In this document: one piece after another, positions 2,602 to 61,424 of the stretch
How positions within the stretch are numbered: the first letter of the stretch is position 1
Layout of the letters: each line of letters opens with the position of its first letter
Source: Trichosphaerium sp. ATCC 40318
Lineage: Eukaryota > Protista > Tubulinea
Assembly (NCBI GenBank): GCA_038496445.1
Contig: JALMLS010000320.1
Coordinates: 186,001-250,000, forward strand
DNA length: 64,000 bases
Direction: 5' to 3'
The notes under the pieces: model-generated
The model's database searches: none
The model's input: only the letters and a program-made list of their open reading frames with translations
What the model was told of the DNA's origin: nothing
Translations under genes and position numbers: made by a program

Positions 2602-4077
2602 TCACATCGCACAATACTCTTCAAGGTTTGTTATATTAGACTGTTGTATAACCTTACCAGCCACTAAAACCGATCTAATTCCGATTATATGATCTGGAAC
2701 CTCTTGTGGTACACATTCTTGATTTGCTATTGATGTAACATTAAACAGCTCAATGTGAAGCCCTTCTAGTACTCCTTTCTTTTTTGTACAGAAAACGTGC
2801 AATTGACCATTTTCATACCAAGCCTTACAAACACCATTCTCTTTACCTGCTTTGAAAGTATTCTCCTCTCGTAATTGCCCATTTGAATACCAGATACTCT
2901 CAATACCTTCCCTACCCCTCTTACAATACGTGCATTTATCTTTCAACTGGCCATTGGCATACCAAGTCTTCATCTCGCCTCTGACTTGTCTATTTGTTGT
3001 TGTGCAAGCCAGCTGGATTTGACCGTTTTCATAATAACAAGCGATCTTTTCTGTTACTCTATCAAGTTTAATGACCTTCCTCTCGATGCTGCCGTTCTCA
3101 TAGTACATGGTGGTCTCACCTGTGGTATTGCCTTCGCCTATAATTGATTTCGAGAGCAATTGACCATTTGGGTACCATTCTCTTGATACACCGTACTTCT
3201 CACCGTTCGTTAGAGTAGAGGCTTCTTTCAGGTTTCCGTTTCCGTAATATTTTCGTACTGGTCCTTCTATCTTGTTGTTCTTGGCAATATATTCCTTTTT
3301 CATAGCACCATGTTCGTACCACTTTCTAACACTAAAAGTTAGAATAAAACAAGAAAAAGAAACGGAGTAAAAACAAAAATGTATCATTTTAGCGCAGCTG
3401 CTGGCAATTTACAAGAAATGCTCGTTCAAGTACCTGCATTGACCATGTTTCTTGGCGTTTTTATATGTTTTTTGAGATTTCATTCTCCCATTGGTAAACC
3501 ACGTTGTTACGATGCCTTCATACTTTCCCTTTCTTCTGATACCATAAGTCTCCTTCGTACCATCACTGTACCATGTTTTAACTTCACCTTCTTCTGTACC
3601 ATTTACCTTGGTACTATGATACTCTAAGACACCATCTTCAGTCCAATTCTTATACTCTCCTTCTATTTTACCATTCACAAAGTTGAATTCTATTCCTAGC
3701 TGTCCATTTTTGTGATACCTCCTAAATAACCCATTCTTAACACCATTCACTTGACTATACTCTGTTTCTATCTCTCCGGTATCATAGAACTCTCTACAGT
3801 TTCCGTTTTTCCGCCAATGACCTTTAACTTTGCCGTTTGCATGCCATTGTATCCATAGACCGCTGCGTTCGAGTGATGGCGTAAAGTGGGTTCGAATTGC
3901 AAACGTTTTTGATAGCGTATGCCATTTTGTAAAGGATTCTGCATTAAACGAACAAATATAGCGTTGTATGTCGTTTGGGAGTGATTGAATAGAAATAGAA
4001 GTGTTGTTTGCAAATTCGTGTTTGCTTTGGTTCTTTTTGCGTAGAGCGATAGTACCGTCTTTGAGTGGAATTGACAT
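2602..4077 (-). CDS. F-box + MORN-variant (YwqK-like) repeat protein, 2 exons
   Basis: F-box-like SLPNDIQRYICSF, then many 24-aa W/Y-x-x-NG...G repeats. Intron 3433-3326 (GTAC..TTAG) joins the two ORFs as GQCR|KWYEHG. Confidence 0.85.
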
Positions 4078-9000: not shown

Positions 9001-9716
9001 ATGTCAGCAAAACACAAGGTAATTAGAATAATTAGTAACCTAATACTCATTTAACAACGACATAGAGGACTTGCGACTCCTATCGTATTTATAGCCACAT
9101 ATTACACCTTCCTGTGGAGCTACACCTTATTATCACAGAGATAGATGCTGAAATATATTGTTTATGGCCTCTGTTATCAAAACACACAGCGTTGACAACA
9201 AGGTTTGATATAGACTTGAAAAAACATGGTAAATGGTTAAGACACTCTTATCTCTCGAAGGTGCCACAAATACTACAACAAGATTACTGGATACATGGCC
9301 AAAGAAACGGCGAGAGCACCACTTGGTTTAACAATGGAATGTTACGCAAGCAGTACACGTTTATCAATAATGAACTACATGGCAGCTACAAAAAGTGGTA
9401 TGATGATGGTCAAATACGTATGGACTGTGTTTATGACAATGGTAAGCTACAAGGAGAATTCAAAGAGTGGCACATCCAGGGACACCTTGGAAAGATGTGC
9501 TTTTATGTTGATGGCAAAATACAAGGATTATGCAACCATTGGGGTGTCCAAGGTAACCTATGGATGCAATGTGACTATGATGATGGTAATCTAAAAGAAT
9601 ACAAGGAATGGCATACCAATGGTACATTATGGCAGTTGTGTAAGTATGAGAACAATAAACTGAAAGTGCGCAAGGCATGGGATATGCAGGGTAATTTGCA
9701 AATAGTTGAGCAATAA
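9001..9716 (+). CDS. F-box + MORN-variant repeat protein, 2 exons
   Basis: Exon 1 MSAKHK (9001-9018), phase-0 intron 9019-9065, then HLPVELHLII...WPLLSK...TTRFDIDLKKHGKW and 24-aa repeats. Confidence 0.85.
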
Positions 9717-13160: not shown

Positions 13161-13756
13161 CCATTCAATCTACGATCAAACCTTAGAATTTCAGAGTTCA
13201 GGTTGGTGTGATGCTGTTTTGTACTGGCTTATCTCCTGGATATACGCTTTTGGTGCCCAGCTTAACGCGATCACGAGATCCTTTCTGCAATAGACTCTTA
13301 GTATACAACTTTGTGCGAACAACTAAACTGACACGTGACTTTGGTTAACGTACTGGGACGGAAAGAAAAACAGAATGCTCTGATACTTCCAACACAAATT
13401 GCTTTCGCGATATAGTGTTACGGGAAATAGATTTTAGTGTTTCGCGACCAAATTCGTTGGTTCCCAAACTTGACAACAACGAAACGGTTAGCACACAAAA
13501 GCGGTTGATAAAAAAACTTGACGAAAAAGGCTGCCACGAACTTCAATATTGTCCTCTCGTTATTAGTAGAGTCAGCAATAATAAATACTCTTCGCATCTT
13601 GTGTATAGTGTGCTGTACTATAAGAGCAAGTTTATGAAGATCTCGTTTGGAGTTGTCACGTGACTAGCGACGATAAAAAATGGGTCAAAAAAAAGTGAAA
13701 AAGCGCTTGATTAAAGTCGTTAAAAATACCAGCGTTGACAAGTCTAATGCCCATAA

Positions 13757-16309
13757 ATGAAGCCTGTAGTACAATTAGTTGGTGTTTATACAGGACAGGA
13801 CTATACACTTCATTTACCCACATGGAGAAGCAAAAAACGGTTTTTTGAATCGGCTGCAGCAGAACTTGGTGTTCATACCTACGATGAGTGGTATAATATA
13901 GTTTGGGATGATTTGAGGCGTATAAAAGGGAAACGGTTCATTAATAATAGGTGCTGCGCTTTTAACGCCGTTTTACGCCTATTAACACCGGTTGCGTAGT
14001 TATGAAGGCTCTTTACAAAATTGTTTGGTTGATTTGTACAAACACTACAATTGGAAGCCCTGGCAGTTTACGTACGCGAATTTAGGCTACTGGCACTGTT
14101 ACAGCTGTGTTTATCATTTGACATGCATAAGAATAACGCCCAGCGGATATTTTGACTCGGAGCCAAATAGAGTACGTGTATTAGATGATATGGCCGCGTC
14201 AATGTCGCTAAAGACGCTTGACGATTGGTACACTATCACAAAACATACAATCACTTTAAAAGGCGGGGATGCACTCTTACGCATGTAAGACGTATTTGCT
14301 TAGTTGTATTGACGCGTTTTTAAGCTACAATGGCTCAATTTCAAGATGCCTAGAGTCGCTATTTCCCAACTTCGATTGGCAAATATGGCGCTTCCAGAAT
14401 TTACCGTCAGGGAGTTTGAATGATACAAGACATCTTGAACTTGCATTTCAGAATGTTGCCCAACTTCTCAGAGTGAAGATAAATGAGCAATGGTATGATA
14501 TTACATATGACTCGTTTTGTGATAAAGGCTGCGGTTCAAGCATTTTAGAAAAGTAAGTAAAAAATAAGAAACCAAAAAATTTCGGCTTGTCACAAACGGA
14601 CGGTTTGTTTTTCTACTGGTTTAACCTCATACATGTTCAATAGGTTTGGAGGATCTTTAGGCGCTTGTTTAGAGAACCTTGTTCCAAATGAAGAATGGAA
14701 ATTGTGGAAACTAGAGTAAGTTTTGTTTTGTCGTTGATTTTGTTCTGTTAACAATGACTGTAGGACTGTACCCCTTGGTTTATGGCAAAAATTAAATACA
14801 CAACGATTAGCTTTTAATACTGACCTTGGTGAAGTGTTGAATGTAAAGGCTCTAGAAGATTGGTATGATATACCATCATCAGAGTTAAGGAGTTGTGGTG
14901 CTTATAGTATTATTACCCAGTGCGTTCTTTTGTACTTTGATGTATCAATTATTTACTGACATTGCTTTAGGTACGACTCAATGTTTGATTGTTTAAACAC
15001 TATTTATCCTGATTATCCATGGGAGAAATGGAAGTTCAAGTGCGCTATTATTAATGTTGTAATAATTATTATCGGTACCTTATTGGAGCCTTAGTCGAAG
15101 AGACAAAGGTATTTATCGCAGGAACGAAGATAGTATTCTTTCCAAAAAGTTAAATATTAAAACTGAGAGGGACAAGTTTATAAGGATGTCTAAAGCTTTT
15201 GGATTCAAGACAATCGATGATTGGTATAACATTGAAAAACAACAACTTCTCAGACACGGTGGTCGTATTATTCTGTACACATTCTTCATTCTCTACAGTC
15301 ATATTTTCTAACAAGGTTTAGGGAACAACATGAAGGCCAAGTTTCTCAATGCTTGTCTACTATATTTCCAGAGTTTTATTGGATACCTTGGAGATTCAAA
15401 AAATGGGCTATTGAAGTAGCAAGACATCAATATGATAAAGCATTAACCAAGCTTCCAATGCTTAGAAAAAGTCTTGGTATTACTTCACCTGATATGTGGT
15501 ACGTGATTTCTTTATACAAGTTTATCCTATGATAGCGGAAGCTAAACAAGTTGAGTTAGGTATCGGATATCACAACATCAATTGATAGAAAATGATTGTA
15601 ACATATTGGTTAAATTCTGGCCTTTTATTCTTTCGGATTTTGACCCAAAGTACCCTTGGGTATGGAATAACTTTAACGCTGGTGGAAAGAAATCTACTCA
15701 AAGGTATTGCTGGGTTTAATAAAGAGCTATATTTGATTCTATAATAAGTATGATCTCACCCAAACTTCTAGATTGTTGGTCAGTGCATTGGAGATTATTT
15801 TCCCGAATGAAGAGATTGTTGAAGAAGCAAAGTTAGATCTACAAACACAGAGTGTTGATAGTGTTACTGTTGATATTTATATTCCAAATCAAAATATAGC
15901 AATCGAGTACCAAGGTATGAACTGAAAGAGACCCAAAAAATCATATGTTGACAATCTTACAACCCCTAGGTGAACAACATTATAAAGACATATATTCTTG
16001 GTACCCATCAGATGTACAGAAAATACATGATGTCGAGAAGAAGCAACTCTGTAGAGAGATTGGTACGTTGACCTTTAACAACTGCTTGAGTTTTGAAGAA
16101 ATTACTTACTTTTTCTTGAAGGTGTTCACTTGATTCCAATACCTTATTGGTGGAAACATGATGTGGCATCTATAGCAGCTACAATTAACTATTTTGTTCC
16201 TTGCTCTGATATTAAAAAGAATCTATTCAAATCCGCCAAGCCGCTTCTTGAAGATGATTTAAAGATACCGTTCTTGAATGATCTAATGAGTCCAAACGCT
16301 ACTTTCTAG
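13757..16309 (+). CDS. Trp-rich (DWY) tandem-repeat protein with a C-terminal PD-(D/E)XK (Vsr/DUF559-like) nuclease domain, multi-exon
   Basis: About six ~70-aa repeats (L-x-DWY-x-I...GG...GS...CL...P-x-x-x-W-x-x-W-x-F), then VDIYIPNQNIAIEYQGEQHY...DVEKKQLCREIGVHLIPIPYWW. The start codon is uncertain. Confidence 0.8.
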
Positions 16310-16764
16310 ATACAAAAAAGAGTATAATATCAATAAAGTGGACGGACACGTGAGAACTGATGCAAAGAATACAAGGAAGACATTGTTCTGAAACAAAAAG
16401 AACAAATAGCACAAATAGCTCATCAGATGGTAGTGAACAACTGTAATCGGCATGCGATAGTGGTGGAGTGTAGCAACGTATTGTGTTTAAGGAGAGTGCG
16501 CTCTGATAAAACACCTAACAATAAAAATGAAAAAAGTATCAAATTAACAACTAGTAAACACGTGGTTGGCTTCGCCGTAAATAACACTGTAAAACATCGT
16601 GCAACTGGTCACAACAAGATTCGAAAAGTTTCCATTCTTTAGCAGTCGCAACTGCACAGCAGCAGTGTTGTTACCTTTCTGGCAAAGCCAACAGTCTTTT
16701 TTTTTTTGGATTGTTAAGTCAGAGTAGGTTAATTTTACTTTTACAATTCATCCTAACACCTGCC

Positions 16765-18270: not shown

Positions 18271-19078
18271 ATGGCCTTACAACACAATGTATGGTATTTT
18301 ACAAGAATTTTCAGTAGCTAACTGTGTTTAGGTAAGCGCAAGCAGGGTGCACCACGATAGTCCCCTACTACGTCTTCCTGTGGAGTTACAACTAGACATC
18401 ATTGATTTAGACTCAGAAGTGTACGTTAAAATGCCAATCTTATCAAAACAAACAGCAACGACTACAAGATTTGATTGTGACCTGAAAAAACACGGAAAGT
18501 GGCTGAAAATAAGGATAAACTCGAAAGTATCATGTGAAGAGTATTGGAAACACGGTGAACGTCATGGAACGTTCAAATCATGGCATAACAACGGTCAACT
18601 AAAGAGCGAACTTAAATATCTCAATGGTAAGCTAGAAGGAGAGGCCAAGGATTGGCACATAAACGGTCAGTGTAGTCAACAACGCTTTTATGTCAATCAC
18701 AAGCTTCATGGAGAGTTCAAAAGGTGGCACAAAAATGGACAGTTGCTATTAGAGTGTCAGTTTTTTAAAAACAAACATGAAGGAAAATTTCGATCATGGT
18801 ATAGAAACAACGGACAGCTGATGGTGGAGCGTCATTACGTTAATGGCTTATCTGAAGGAGAGTATAAAAAGTGGTATAGTAACGGACAACTGATGGTTGA
18901 GTGTCAGTACATTAATGGTAAACGTGAAGGTGACTTTAAAATTTGGCATGTGAATGGTCAAATGTCTTATCGTTGTACTTATGTCAATAATTACAAGCGA
19001 CAATGCAAGGGTTGGAATGAGGATGGTACACAACAAAAAGAAAACGCTGCGCTGAACGGCTGGTTAAGGCCAATGTGA
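18271..19078 (+). CDS. F-box + MORN-variant repeat protein, 2 exons
   Basis: Exon 1 MALQHN (18271-18288), phase-0 intron 18289-18331, then LLRLPVELQLDII...ILSK...TTRFDCDLKKHGKW and about 7 WH/WY-x-NGQ repeats. Confidence 0.88.
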
Positions 19079-55782: not shown

Positions 55783-56564
55783 ATGCTGACCAGTCCCAAT
55801 ACTGTGGTGTGCGAGGTATCATAATAAAGGCAAAGGTAGTTAACAACTCATATTAATAGAGATTAACTGCACAATCACGTGATTTCCATCTATTACACCT
55901 ACCAGTTGAGATCCAGCTAGATATTATAGATTTGGACTCATTTACATATTTTATATGGCCGCTTATGTCGAAACAGGCAGCAATGACCACAAGGTTTGAT
56001 GGTGAGATGAAAAAGCATGGAAAATGGGTTAGAAGGTTCAATAAGAAACTCGTAGAGCAAAACTACTGGAAACACGGCGTAAGAGAAGGAGAACACAAAG
56101 ATTGGTATTTCAACGGCCAATTGGAGACCCAGTGTAATTACATCAATGGTAAACGAGAGGGAGAATTCAAGGAATGGCATTTCAATGGCCAATTGGAGAT
56201 CCAATGTAATTACATCAATGGCAAACGAGAAGGGGAATGCAAACAATGGCATTTCACTGGCGAATTATATAGCCAGTTTAATTACCTCAATGGCAAACTG
56301 GAAGGTGAATACAAGCAATGGCATGACAATGGCCAACTGAGGGAGCGTTTTAATTACGTAAATGATGAGCGAGAAGGAGAATACAAACAATGGCATGACA
56401 ATGGCCAATTGCGCGTGAAGTGTAATTACATCAATGGTAAACAAGAAGGAGAATGCAAGGAATGGTATGCCAATGGCCAATTGGAGAGCCAGTGTAATTA
56501 CATCAATGGTAAACAACAAGGAGAAGGCAAACACTGGCGTGATAATGGCCAATTAATTGTGTAA
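55783..56564 (+). CDS. F-box + MORN-variant repeat protein with a homogeneous repeat array, 2 exons
   Basis: Exon 1 MLTSPNTVVCE, phase-0 intron 55816-55859, LLHLPVEIQLDII...WPLMSK...TTRFDGEMKKHGKW, then 6 full 24-aa repeats and a partial one. Confidence 0.9.
56103..56560 (+). repeat. 72-bp coding tandem repeat (MORN-variant units)
   Basis: TGGCAT...AATGGCCAATTG...TGTAATTACATCAATGG..AAA....GAAGG recurs at a 72-nt period. Confidence 0.9.
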
Positions 56565-59118: not shown

Positions 59119-59952
59119 ATGGAAGAACACTCAGGAACAACTAATTACTTCGACCTTATCGCGCTCCCAGTTGAAGTAGTAGTTCATATTCTTAAACAAG
59201 GAACGCATACACTTCGCGCGGCCCAAACTTGTCGCCTCTTGAGAGATATCGTTCACAAATATGTTGGATACAACCACATCAATGTTATCCATACATCCAC
59301 AGTGCTAATGCTTGCTATGCGTCCTTTATTACTGCAAAACACGAGCCTTAGATTAAACAAGCATACAATGAATGATAATCATTTGCGTTTACTTAAAGGC
59401 GTACATACTATTAGCATGATTGATTGCACTCTAATAACGGATTATGGGTTCAAGTCGATGGCTGGCGTACATGCGATTTATCTATCAGAAACGAGCATAA
59501 CAGATGATGGGTTGGATGCGTTGGCTGGAGTACACACAATCTATTTAAATAGATGTGAACAAATTACAGACAAGGGCATCAAGACACTGGCGGGAGTACA
59601 CGATATTGATCTGTCACAAACGAGCATAACAGATGAAGGTTTGAAGGCGTTGGCAGGTGTACACACAATCTGCTTGTGTTGTTGCAAAGAAATAACAGAC
59701 AAGGGCATCATGACACTGGCGGGAGTACATGAGATTGATCTATCAGAAACGAGTGTAACAGATAAAGGCTTGAAGGCGTTGGCAGGTGTACACACAATCT
59801 GCTTGTGTTGTTGCAAAGAAATAACAGATAAGGGCATCATGACACTGGCGGGAGTACATGATATTGATCTGGCACTAACGAGTGTAACAGATGAAGGCAT
59901 CAAAGCGTTGGCTGGTGCACACAGAATTGCTTTATCGTATGCGACAGTATAG
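59119..59952 (+). CDS. F-box + leucine-rich repeat protein, intronless ORF
   Basis: LIALPVEVVVHIL...AAQTCRLLR F-box followed by about 8 LRRs of the form ITDxGxxxLAGVHxIxL. Confidence 0.9.
   Translation: MEEHSGTTNYFDLIALPVEVVVHILKQGTHTLRAAQTCRLLRDIVHKYVGYNHINVIHTSTVLMLAMRPLLLQNTSLRLNKHTMNDNHLRLLKGVHTISMIDCTLITDYGFKSMAGVHAIYLSETSITDDGLDALAGVHTIYLNRCEQITDKGIKTLAGVHDIDLSQTSITDEGLKALAGVHTICLCCCKEITDKGIMTLAGVHEIDLSETSVTDKGLKALAGVHTICLCCCKEITDKGIMTLAGVHDIDLALTSVTDEGIKALAGAHRIALSYATV
59566..59930 (+). repeat. 129-bp coding tandem repeat (a 21-aa + 22-aa LRR pair)
   Basis: ACAGA(C/T)AAGGGCATC starts at 59566, 59695 and 59824. Confidence 0.92.
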
Positions 59953-60317: not shown

Positions 60318-61424
60318 TTATTCTAACGTTTTTGGAAATATCCAACCTTTGTGGTCTAATTTACTTCCATTAATATAAAACTCTGAAAAATAAGATCCAT
60401 TATAATACCAATATCTGTATTCTCCTTCTAGTTTATCATTTTTATAAAAACAATGAATTTTTAACTCTCCTTTGTGGGCACGCCAAACCTTATACTCTCC
60501 TTCTCTTTTACCATTGATATATCGACAGGTTTTCTTCAATTCTCCATTGGTAGACCATACCTTTAATTTTCCATGTACCTTACCATTGACACAAAAAAAC
60601 TGCTGTTTAAGTCGGCCATTTGAATACCAACTGTTGAACTCTCCTTCTTCTTTACCATTGGCATAATGGCTATGCTCTATAACTTGACCTTTACTATTCC
60701 ATCGCAAGGAGTCTCCGTCTTTTTTACCATTGAAAAAGAAGCATCCGCAACTAAGAAAACCATTGTTATGCCATTCCTTGTAAACACCATGTAAAACACC
60801 TTTCAGATAGCAACATTGTTTTCTCATTTGATTGTTTTTATGCCAACACCTACAATCTCCTTCTCTGATACCTTTGACATATGTACACTCCTCATCCAAT
60901 ACACCATTCACGTGATATGTTTTATACTCACCGTCTAAAAGACCATCGACAAAGTGTGAATGCTTCTTTATCCCAAGACCATTATACCACTCTTTGTATT
61001 CTCCTGATAACTTACTGTTCTCATTGTAATACGATTCAGTACATCTATTACCATTGTAGTACCTTAAAGGTATGTTAGCGTGTCTTGAAAGATCACTCGA
61101 GGTAACTTTCAAAACAAGATAAAAAGGTCTTGGTTCGAAAAATCTGAGATCAGACTTTTTTTTAACCACGTGTCAATAAAAAGAATTGAAATTATACCAT
61201 GTTTTGTATTCTCCGTGGAGTTTCCCTGATATGTATGTACACTTTGCACATATTACATCGTTGAAGTATTTACGCCACCTCCCATGTTTTTTTAAACAAT
61301 CGTCATACCTACTCGCCTTTGCTGCTGTATTTGACAAAACTGGCCATATCTTGTATAAAGAGGTGTCCATTTCCATGATATCAAGCTGTAACTCTACCGG
61401 AAGTGAAGTCAGGTCGCTACACAT
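60318..61424 (-). CDS. F-box + MORN-variant repeat protein, 2 exons
   Basis: LTSLPVELQLDIM...WPVLS...SRYDDCLKKHGRW. A phase-2 intron at 61197-61063 splits a Trp codon (KTW|YYNG), followed by about 10 repeats. Confidence 0.88.

Follow-up and report, generated by a model that had tools for sequence, protein, structure and literature searches.

A nuclear, intron-rich protist gene encoding a DUF4046-type repeat array and a predicted Vsr-like nuclease domain

The Vsr, DUF559 and DUF2726 proteins are placed together among the PD-(D/E)XK nucleases (group 58 and entry 110 in PMC3424549). These proteins are prokaryotic and either single-domain or otherwise fused, whereas the nuclease domain described here, which appears to have the same fold and active-site layout (residue equivalence being assigned by spacing), stands behind DUF4046 repeats. 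A second related system is the EDxHD homing endonuclease I-Bth0305I (3r3p), in which a Vsr-like C-terminal catalytic domain likewise follows a separate DNA-binding region, a role that is putative for the repeats of our protein. The targeting part of I-Bth0305I consists of two NUMOD motifs and an HTH instead of a repeat array, and the EDxHD homing genes lie in phage introns and inteins whereas the present gene is nuclear and intron-rich. The same layout is also found in the FASTK, OPR-RAP and HPR-RAP proteins, where a helical array precedes a Vsr-like PD-(D/E)XK domain that closes with a hydrophobic strand of the P-Y-x-x-W type. Both the helical-repeat and RAP proteins and the DUF4046 family are large and occur in protists, with structural Z values between them of 8.5-10.1, but the repeats of the former are helical hairpins of 37-40 aa whereas those studied here are of 75 aa and five helices. 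With the TALE nucleases, and with TALE, PPR and PUF proteins, the likeness is one of concept only, namely tandem modules before a nuclease. The TALE nucleases use a FokI-type domain, while the present protein is naturally fused to a Vsr-type domain, and the TALE/PPR/PUF code assigns one module to each base through a few hypervariable residues, whereas the DUF4046 units show no restricted hypervariable pair in their column entropies. We read the gene as probably encoding a Vsr-like Mg2+-dependent DNA endonuclease in which a helical DUF4046 array would give target choice or tethering, with a probability of about 0.55.

The gene occupies positions 13757-16309 on the + strand of the window (the whole stretch of DNA analysed, 64,000 nucleotides of Trichosphaerium sp. 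ATCC 40318). According to its open reading frames and splice sites it has 13 exons and 12 introns, every intron being GT-AG and 40-91 nt long, and the spliced frame is open throughout (1857 nt, about 618 aa). The exons, all on the + strand, were scored against a repeat-unit profile and a nuclease profile made from database proteins alone. The ATG at 13757 is preceded by an in-frame TAA and is a predicted start, RNA contigs leaving 13600-14463 uncovered. From this start exon 1 (13757-13950, defined by its ORF and GT donor) encodes the last part of a degenerate unit, then the first half of repeat 1, from helix A to G-x-x-x-I-N-N with the motif DEWY; its residues 26-63 correspond to positions 37-74 of the unit profile (28.6 bits). 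The second half of repeat 1 (Y-x-G-S ... W-x-x-W-x-F) is found in exon 2 (14000-14071), with AG/GT boundaries in phase 2 at both ends and a unit-profile score of 29.2 bits. Repeat 2 (DDWY) begins in exon 3 (14144-14284; 41.1 bits), which holds its first half and aligns without indels to the orthologous contig L001. Exon 4 (14325-14552; 70.8 bits), the donor of which is given by the RNA joint 14552>14644, joins the second half of repeat 2 to the first half of repeat 3 (EQWY) and is the sole exon with a whole repeat unit, in permuted register. Repeat 3 is completed by exon 5 (14644-14715; 21.1 bits), both flanking introns of which are seen in spliced RNA contig record 1. Repeat 4 is divided between exon 6 (14764-14919; EDWY, 34.9 bits), the acceptor of which is given by the joint 14715>14764, and exon 7 (14971-15039; 28.9 bits), bounded from GT-AG and frame only.

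A basic linker (exon net charge +8) opens exon 8 (15095-15274; 36.0 bits) before the first half of repeat 5 (DDWY), with the donor given by the joint 15274>15322. Exon 9 (15322-15498; 32.3 bits) completes repeat 5 with its second half and opens repeat 6 as far as D-M-W, and its RNA joint 15497>15559 (cut +1) places intron 9 at 15499-15559 and splits the W codon of DMWY. A donor for this intron at 15519 was ruled out, the RNA contig placing it at 15498. The remainder of the degenerate repeat 6 (W-V-W-N-N-F) and the linker to the nuclease are in exon 10 (15560-15703), both boundaries of which are in spliced RNA contig record 3. The nuclease domain is divided over three exons that are collinear on the nuclease profile: exon 11 (15772-15914) with the N-terminal helix and strands 1-3 (35.5 bits, profile positions 32-79), exon 12 (15970-16062), which completes the G of E-Y-Q-G and continues through E-Q-H-Y and H-D-V-E-K (21.8 bits, positions 81-109; donor by the joint 16061>16121, cut +1), and exon 13 (16122-16309) with the last strand and helix (22.9 bits, positions 112-137), P-Y-W-W at 16142-16153, a 35-residue tail and the TAG at 16307-16309. 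RNA contig record 4 spans 16121-16440 and continues beyond. The protein thus read has six Trp-rich repeats of ~72-75 aa each before its C-terminal nuclease domain, marked in order by DEWY, DDWY, EQWY, EDWY, DDWY and DMWY and also by W-x-x-W-x-F motifs, and the exon pieces match each other inside the gene (tblastn E 1e-5 to 1e-8). The intron-rich gene with about six Trp-rich repeats that the sequence-only reading had described is borne out, with its motifs and coordinates, by the open reading frames, splice sites, RNA joints and profiles.

The gene is intact, transcribed and nuclear, and belongs to a protist. Half of its introns (4, 5, 8, 9, 10 and 12; 6 of the 12) are shown exactly by spliced RNA-derived contigs from one public run (X1). 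The orthologous contig L001 is 82% identical and has introns at the same places. Its exons show 76-90% identity and no indels; of its four introns, three show 60-62% and the fourth 78%, and three carry indels. Exon 2 is 90% identical to L001 and the intron after it 60%. Over about 210 codons dN/dS against this contig is 0.15. A word search with exon 4 gave a single match, an 111-aa ORF (P0001) of a related organism, 81% identical. A pseudogene or a dead nuclease was rejected on expression, the dN/dS of 0.15 and the intact residues, and the twelve spliceosomal introns led us to reject an insertion from a giant virus as well.

The C-terminal domain is assigned, on a structural model, to the Vsr / EDxHD / DUF559 / DUF2726 / RAP branch of PD-(D/E)XK. 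The fold was modelled on the domain of the closest homologue (P0015:511-667), which is 33-43% identical to the window exons, the window domain itself being known from separate exons. This AlphaFold model (pLDDT 88.3) has an alpha-beta-beta-beta-alpha-beta core with the elements H26-40, E47-55, E61-68, E73-78, H95-110, E114-119 and H126-136. Foldseek matched it with probability 1.00 to T. gondii mitoribosome chains and to I-Bth0305I and with 0.99 to Vsr, and VIA gave Z values of 10.1 for 9i05_Xr, 10.0 for 3hrl (DUF559), 9.9 for 3r3p (I-Bth0305I), 9.3 for 1cw0 (Vsr) and 8.5 for 9gek, the range 9-10 also covering 1vsr. The superposition on I-Bth0305I has an rmsd of 3.5 over 96 residues and comes without an HMM or sequence match. 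Among Pfam families only DUF2726 (PF10881) recurs on the C-terminal domains of the family, on 35 of 79 at E<=1 (best E 6.4e-6), mostly below or near its gathering score of 24.7 bits; window exons 11-13 scanned singly have no DUF2726 match, the domain being split over three exons. Neither Vsr (PF03852) nor DUF559 (PF04480) is among the 25 of 27 matched families listed for these 79 domains at E<=1. A PDB sequence search with exon 11 and the C-terminal profile gave chance matches only (a fimbrial protein and a flavoprotein), and a feature search of the Atlas with exon 13 gave unnamed clusters only.

The window exons encode every residue that is nearly invariant in the family (D, P, E, Y, G, H, D, K, P and W), and the protein has the invariant motif set D, E-Y-x-G-x-x-H, D-x-x-K and P-Y-W-W. 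Numbered as in P0015:511-667, D65, H82 and D101 are conserved in at least 90% of 79 sequences. Using the residue correspondences to Vsr and I-Bth0305I in PMC3239194 together with spacing, the Asp of V-D-I-Y-I-P (codon 15872-15874), of metal-binding type, would be equivalent to the metal ligand D51 of Vsr, the His of E-Q-H-Y (codon 15978-15980), 17 residues after it, to the general base H69, and the Asp of H-D-V-E-K (codon 16029-16031; Lys codon 16038-16040) to D97. The Glu of I-E-Y-Q (codon 15905-15907) would be the extra acidic residue of the EDxHD homing enzymes. I-Bth0305I has the same D, H, D and extra acidic residue in common with our protein, and the D-to-H spacing is 17 in both. The nuclease had been proposed from the letters alone to be apparently intact, Vsr/DUF559-type and related to RAP domains; all the catalytic-type residues are present, and the homologue model (pLDDT 88) agrees with this placement in its Z values for DUF559, for Vsr and, at 8.5, for the RAP of FASTKD4.

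The family to which the gene belongs is very large and so far uncharacterised in the literature searched. The repeat profile matched 5,415 cluster representatives with E<=1e-3, of which 513 reached E<=1e-30, the named sources being Amoebozoa and Heterolobosea (Cavostelium, Nematostelium, Heterolobosea sp. BB2) and MMETSP, and the arrays contain 4-26 repeats. A word search with P0015 had P0002 among the matches listed. The nuclease profile was matched by 100 of the 153 top members, so the layout of a repeat array with a terminal nuclease, first proposed for the window gene and seen there as collinear profile matches, is found in about two thirds of them. In some paralogues a LigE-type DNA ligase follows directly after the nuclease. 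P0146 and P0111 match the NCBIfam DNA ligase model PRK09125 (E 1.5e-39 and 1.9e-29), under the model's cut-off of 200 bits; P0146 also matches the solved ligase 4d05 (3e-26), and P0140 matches DNA_ligase_A_M with 32.5 bits, above the cut-off. Pfam was mostly empty on the extra C-terminal segments of members, where the ligase was seen with NCBIfam and PDB. The window gene has no ligase and is a typical ligase-less member of the family.

Relatives of the nuclease in viruses, also anticipated by the sequence-only reading, were found on IMG/VR viral contigs, with zinc-finger arrays where the repeats would be and DUF2726 scores of 18.5-19.8 bits, under the cut-off, and in phages, where they are annotated as homing endonucleases. 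The DUF4046-type repeat itself was present in 0 of the 80 viral loci examined. These relatives, in which homing-endonuclease-like genes carry other modular DNA-binding arrays, together with the size and diversity of the family and its arrays of 4-26 repeats, would suit a selfish or conflict role, that is, a nuclear free-standing homing-type enzyme or a defence enzyme (against giant viruses or mobile DNA, for example) whose rapidly diversifying arrays recognise foreign DNA or proteins instead of taking part in housekeeping repair. We consider such a role quite improbable for this gene, as the window copy is under clear purifying selection over the codons compared with L001 and has twelve spliceosomal introns, no flanking mobile-element features were seen, tblastn of the exon pieces found no further copy in the 64-kb window, and there is no link to infection.

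The relatives bear as well on the substrate expected of a Vsr-like endonuclease. DNA seems likelier than RNA as judged from sequence: the leaning towards DNA over an OPR-RAP model acting on RNA comes from the fusion of paralogues to DNA ligase and from Pfam RAP (PF08373) being as good as unmatched (1 of 79 C-terminal domains, E 0.038), and also from the viral and phage nuclease relatives, which look like homing endonucleases. Because the ligase stands directly after the nuclease in those paralogues, the family is likely to nick or cut DNA, which the ligase-bearing members would also reseal. The structural matches to RAP proteins, as good as those to DNA enzymes, count against the DNA reading.

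These matches would suit an organellar RNA factor of the helical-repeat and RAP type (like HPR/OPR-RAP or FASTK), the repeats then binding specific mitochondrial transcripts or rRNA pieces and the nuclease-like domain cutting or holding RNA ends. The top structural matches include Toxoplasma mitoribosome chains (Z 10.1 and 8.9), the FAST1-FAST2-RAP part of FASTKD4 (Z 8.5) and a Tetrahymena mitoribosome chain (Z 6.9), and in two members the C-terminus is a variant domain that RAP/MTES_1575 matches weakly (RAP on the variant C-terminus of P0023 scores 20.0 bits, under the 24.2-bit cut-off). Moreover the N-termini of the family are more basic and less acidic than internal segments, 23% against 5% having no acidic and at least three basic residues. 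Large paralogous families are typical of the organellar RNA-binding repeat proteins PPR, OPR and HPR, and the present family is large and paralogous too. Nevertheless we hold this explanation to be rather unlikely, as Pfam prefers DUF2726 to RAP on the C-terminal domains, the closest relatives by sequence beyond the family itself are homing-endonuclease-like genes of viral contigs and phages, and members are fused to an ATP-dependent DNA ligase. In addition, the window protein, as read from its predicted start, does not begin like a presequence, positions 2-21 holding 1 basic and 1 acidic residue, and the repeat is unrelated to the HPR, OPR and FAST modules.

The repeat corresponds to Pfam DUF4046 (PF13255), a eukaryotic repeat family with a Trp-rich unit of 75 residues and the W-x-x-W-[KR]-F motif. 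In precomputed annotation PF13255.12 is placed on the family member P0002, and the repeat model aligns with DUF4046-named clusters of the ESM Atlas, 55-100% of whose members carry PF13255, with TM 0.57/0.62 over 145-166 aligned residues; by features exon 4 scored 0.86 to a DUF4046-named Atlas cluster, which is a lead only. PF13255 was not matched by hmmscan for exon 4, P0002, P0003, P0015, P0022 or 58 three-repeat segments, and the Pfam copy used may lack the model; Pfam on single exons gave no matches. The repeat had been thought to be without functional characterisation, and this stands in that no paper on it was found in the literature searched and its name carries no function, but the repeat itself was already in databases as DUF4046. 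The family period is about 75 aa and the unit is predicted to consist of five short helices. Its conserved core of W, Y, P, G and L residues reads D-W-Y ... G-G-x-x-L-L ... Y-x-G-S ... Y-P ... W-x-x-W-[KR]-F. By the column entropies of 542 units, about 20 of 69 columns vary; these are spread along the whole unit and extend to the helix behind D-W-Y, where K, R, S, T, N and Q are frequent.

Among solved structures no significant relative of the repeat was obtained, the best Foldseek match being annexin with E 0.65 (probability 0.15), and an annexin-like reading was rejected. The best VIA match of the repeat model is a TetR HTH with Z 4.3, SAM and Slx4-CCD domains giving about 3-3.7. A SAM-like reading was also set aside as too weak, Pfam SAM_TNK being matched in 7 of the 58 segments with a best E of about 1e-3 and the VIA Z to SAM being about 3.1. 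P0002 matches Myb_Rap1 at 44 bits, but through ~20 of 59 profile positions (P-x-H-x-W-x-x-W-R), and the model has a loop there instead of a recognition helix; this reading was likewise rejected.

As solved structures offer the repeats no significant relative, nucleic-acid binding by them is a guess from the architecture. The fold weakly resembles small helical bundles with a wide variety of functions (SAM, CUE, TetR-HTH, Slx4 CCD), and the repeat part of the window protein has a near-neutral net charge of +5 in 468 residues, within a family that is only mildly basic (median pI about 9.0). Both would fit a protein-binding or structural scaffold attached to a non-specific or inactive nuclease, the array having no role in nucleic-acid targeting. 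This seems to us very unlikely, given that the catalytic-type residues are all nearly invariant in the family, that the order of array then nuclease is kept in most of the top members, and that the relatives on viral contigs have the nuclease behind DNA-binding zinc-finger arrays.

For the DNA endonuclease with Vsr-like chemistry that we favour, sequence-specific modular recognition by the repeats is something that we infer. The first proposal, a modular sequence-specific DNase or RNase like a TALEN or an OPR-RAP factor, holds for the layout, but the evidence leans towards DNA and the repeat has many variable positions rather than two or three. It is a doubtful extension that DUF4046 is a new nucleic-acid recognition unit, with arrays that programme a Vsr-type nuclease (in some paralogues a nuclease-ligase pair) to defined DNA sites and a readable relationship between repeat and sequence.

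Should target choice indeed lie with the arrays, the family would add a third kind of natural design of repeat array plus nuclease to the organellar hairpin repeats with RAP and the engineered TALE nucleases, and one built on a different module and a Vsr-type catalytic domain. Such a catalytic domain has already been proposed by the authors of I-Bth0305I as a candidate for gene-targeting fusions. The added value of the window locus itself is modest. Nevertheless, with a family of thousands of clusters that is absent from the literature searched, biochemistry on one member would annotate thousands of proteins and could account for a DNA or RNA transaction of amoebae that is as yet unknown. If DUF4046 arrays programme the nuclease, the family would be a natural protein-only modular nuclease system of amoebae and heteroloboseans.

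The gene at 13757-16309 on the plus strand of the window lies in AT-rich eukaryotic DNA (about 37% G+C in the region). Reading of the three forward frames together with a scripted splice-site test gave 13 exons, separated by introns of 40-91 nt which are all GT-AG and joined by a reading frame that is unbroken across them, and the final gene model has 1857 nt and encodes about 618 residues. X1, a public run from 2015 stored as contigs and whose RNA label is a guess, contains 28% of the sampled words of the stretch. When aligned to the window its contigs exactly skip six predicted introns, all on the plus strand and with GT..AG ends (14553-14643, 14716-14763, 15275-15321, 15499-15559, 15704-15771 and 16063-16121), and they must therefore come from spliced RNA. 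One of these contigs sets the end of exon 9 at 15498, within the Trp codon of D-M-W-Y, by which the canonical W-Y-x-I motif is regained in the last repeat. Introns 1, 2, 3, 6, 7 and 11 are based on GT-AG ends, open frame and collinearity with the family profiles, introns 2 and 3 being additionally backed by conservation in the orthologous genomic contig L001; the 5' end of the gene is predicted and lies outside the coverage of the X1 contigs. The gene that the sequence-only reading had placed here is borne out by the six spliced introns, the open frame and the family profiles. X1 differs from the window by a C>T change at 14799, which alters the second base of a Thr codon in exon 6 and gives Ile, and by one absent base at 16332 in the 3' UTR, which are probably strain variation or assembly error (depth below 10).

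L001, a genomic contig of 969 nt that comes from a different sample, carries an orthologue that is 82% identical overall. Its exons show 76-90% identity and zero indels, whereas introns 2, 4 and 5 show 60-62% identity with indels; intron 3 has 78% identity and lacks them. The dN/dS ratio is 0.15, counted exon by exon over about 210 whole codons. Because of the spliced contigs of X1, this contrast between exons and introns and the low dN/dS, we conclude that the gene is expressed, spliced and under purifying selection.

Many other ORFs of the window encode MORN_2 repeats (Pfam E 1e-9 to 5e-27), among them 2602-3387, 3409-4077 and 60318-61169 on the minus strand and 9114-9716, 18347-19078 and 55932-56564 on the plus strand, and this genome seems to have an expanded family of MORN-repeat genes. 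An ORF at 59119-59952 (plus strand) encodes an F-box-like domain with LRR_6 repeats (E 1.2e-15).

The repeat unit consists, in order, of helix A (N-x-R-x-F-x-x-W-L), D-x-W-Y-x-[VI], G-G-x-x-L-L, Y-x-G-S-x-x-x-x-L and Y-P-x-x-x-W-x-x-W-[KR]-F. Six such units, recognisable by DEWY, DDWY, EQWY, EDWY, DDWY and DMWY, make up the array of the window protein, in agreement with the about six Trp-rich repeats noticed beforehand, and the sixth is degenerate. The exon pieces match one another inside the gene (tblastn E 1e-5 to 1e-8), and tblastn found no such match elsewhere in the 64-kb window. All ten introns of the repeat region (introns 1-10, 13951-15771) are in phase 2, which makes the repeat-region exons symmetric (2-2), a pattern that tandem duplication of a two-exon unit after intron gain would produce. 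Eight of the ten fall at two recurring places in the 75-aa unit, either directly before Y-x-G-S (introns 1, 3, 4, 6 and 8) or one residue past W-x-x-W-x-F (introns 2, 5 and 7); the two introns inside the nuclease domain are in phase 1.

All searches used single exons or database homologues as queries. An exhaustive search with a repeat profile built from the aligned separate exon pieces retrieved 5,415 cluster representatives at E<=1e-3, 2,754 at 1e-10 and 513 at 1e-30, the best of them being 326-2124 aa long with 4-26 matching stretches. D-x-W-Y anchors have a modal spacing of 75 residues. Among the sampled matches, those with a named source belong to transcriptomes of the amoebozoans Cavostelium and Nematostelium, of Heterolobosea sp. 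BB2 and of MMETSP, and the others come from metagenomes and Logan assemblies. The repeat, on annotation and structural match, is already present in the databases as DUF4046. PF13255 is given in the precomputed annotation of the family protein P0002, the best structural matches of the repeat model are ESM Atlas clusters named "DUF4046 domain-containing protein" (TM 0.57-0.62; Discosea, Tubulinea and Evosea), and such a cluster ranks second (score 0.86) in a feature-based search with exon 4. Pfam searches of the repeats gave only partial, motif-level matches to Myb_Rap1, SAM_TNK and CUE; hmmscan gave no match to PF13255 even at E<=10, a model possibly missing from the Pfam copy searched. Neither a mention of DUF4046 or PF13255 nor a description of the family was found in the searchable literature.

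A model of three successive units from the closest homologue (P0015:173-391, 58-row alignment) has a pLDDT of 93.7, each unit forming five short helices. No convincing solved relative was found: the best Foldseek match was an annexin (E 0.65, probability 0.15), and VIA against all representatives reached a best Z of 4.3, with zero chains at Z 5, its matches pairing single units with TetR HTH, Slx4 CCD, SAM and winged-helix domains. The repeat fold, as modelled, is a small helical bundle from which no function can be assigned. Column entropies over 542 near-full-length units showed a scaffold conserved at W, Y, P, G and L and about twenty variable columns scattered along the unit, including the helix that follows D-W-Y, where K, R, S, T, N and Q are frequent. 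This pattern would fit a putative diversifying binding surface and differs from the two-residue code of TALE and PPR repeats. Overall, family members are mildly basic (median pI about 9.0) and the array of the window protein almost neutral (net +5 across 468 residues).

A nuclease-profile match was obtained in 100 of the 153 top family members and an E-x-x-G-x-x-H-type motif in 88 of 151 retrieved proteins. The consensus is E-L-D-I-x-I-P ... L-A-F-E-Y-Q-G-E-Q-H-Y ... R-D-x-x-K ... G-I-x-L-I-x-I-P-Y-W-W-D. A 79-row alignment shows conservation of 90% or more for its D, P, E, Y, G, H, D, K, P and W, and exons 11, 12 and 13 of the window gene encode all of them. These exons are collinear on a nuclease profile built without them (positions 32-79, 81-109 and 112-137, with 35.5, 21.8 and 22.9 bits, respectively). 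Among 79 C-terminal domains DUF2726 was the sole recurring Pfam family (35 members, best E 6.4e-6) and RAP gave a single match (E 0.038); the Vsr and DUF559 models were not among the 25 families listed. Vsr, DUF559 and DUF2726 have been grouped together in PD-(D/E)XK, with RAP as a separate eukaryotic entry (PMC3424549). The AlphaFold model of P0015:511-667, whose identity with the window exons is 33-43%, has a pLDDT of 88.3 and an alpha-beta-beta-beta-alpha-beta core. Its neighbours in VIA and Foldseek are a chain of the Toxoplasma mitoribosome (Z 10.1), 3hrl, which is a DUF559 protein (Z 10.0, with an rmsd of 2.6 across 91 residues), the catalytic domain of I-Bth0305I (Z 9.9), Vsr (Z 9.3 and 9.0) and FASTKD4 with its FAST1-FAST2-RAP module (Z 8.5), while generic PD-(D/E)XK enzymes such as Hjc, TnsA and McrC stand clearly below (Z 5-7). 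On this homologue model, the Vsr/DUF559-type PD-(D/E)XK C-terminus of the sequence-only reading holds. Residues D196, H213 and D222 of I-Bth0305I have been equated with D51, H69 and D97 of Vsr, and homing enzymes carry an extra conserved acidic residue (PMC3239194). The spacing of 17 between D and H in I-Bth0305I is the same as that between the invariant Asp and His of our family, which also has a further invariant Asp after the His and an invariant Glu six residues ahead of it. For these reasons we read the predicted active site as complete, the residues being mapped by spacing and literature rather than by superposition.

In three family members the nuclease is directly followed by a LigE-type (small bacterial) ATP-dependent DNA ligase. 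P0146:575-900 has K-L-D-G and matches PRK09125 (NCBIfam, E 1.5e-39, below the 200-bit cut-off) and the solved ligase 4d05 (3e-26), P0111:555-854 matches PRK09125 at 1.9e-29, also below that cut-off, and has lost the motif-I (K-x-D-G) lysine, and P0140:128-474 matches Pfam DNA_ligase_A_M above the cut-off (32.5 bits). Relatives of the nuclease domain are encoded by at least 301 IMG/VR stretches, and hmmsearch found no repeats on the 80 loci fetched. Two of five scanned ORFs, on the viral contigs L005 (4645-6231) and L053 (5479-6198), have treble-clef zinc-finger arrays (DUF4379, DUF723) ahead of the DUF2726-like nuclease, which on sequence is a second, independent design of a modular array plus this nuclease. 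Relatives in annotated Firmicute phages bear the label homing or HNH endonuclease. Because of the ligase fusions, the viral relatives with zinc-finger arrays and these phage labels, we lean towards DNA rather than the RNA of an OPR-RAP model as the predicted substrate. An organellar role is possible because the RAP proteins of mitoribosomes are structurally as similar to the nuclease as the DNA enzymes are, and because family N-termini are enriched in basic, acid-poor composition (23% versus 5% of internal windows); however, the N-terminus of the window protein, itself a prediction, is not of this type. In two other repeat-array proteins (P0023:723-842 and P0073:520-667) the C-terminus is another nuclease-like domain, which matches RAP and MTES_1575 weakly, and because of these variant ends the array seems to occur together with more than one Vsr-like subfamily.

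The window gene is a typical ligase-less member of this family and not a new discovery. The sequence-only suggestion of a modular sequence-specific nuclease is reasonable as its putative function.
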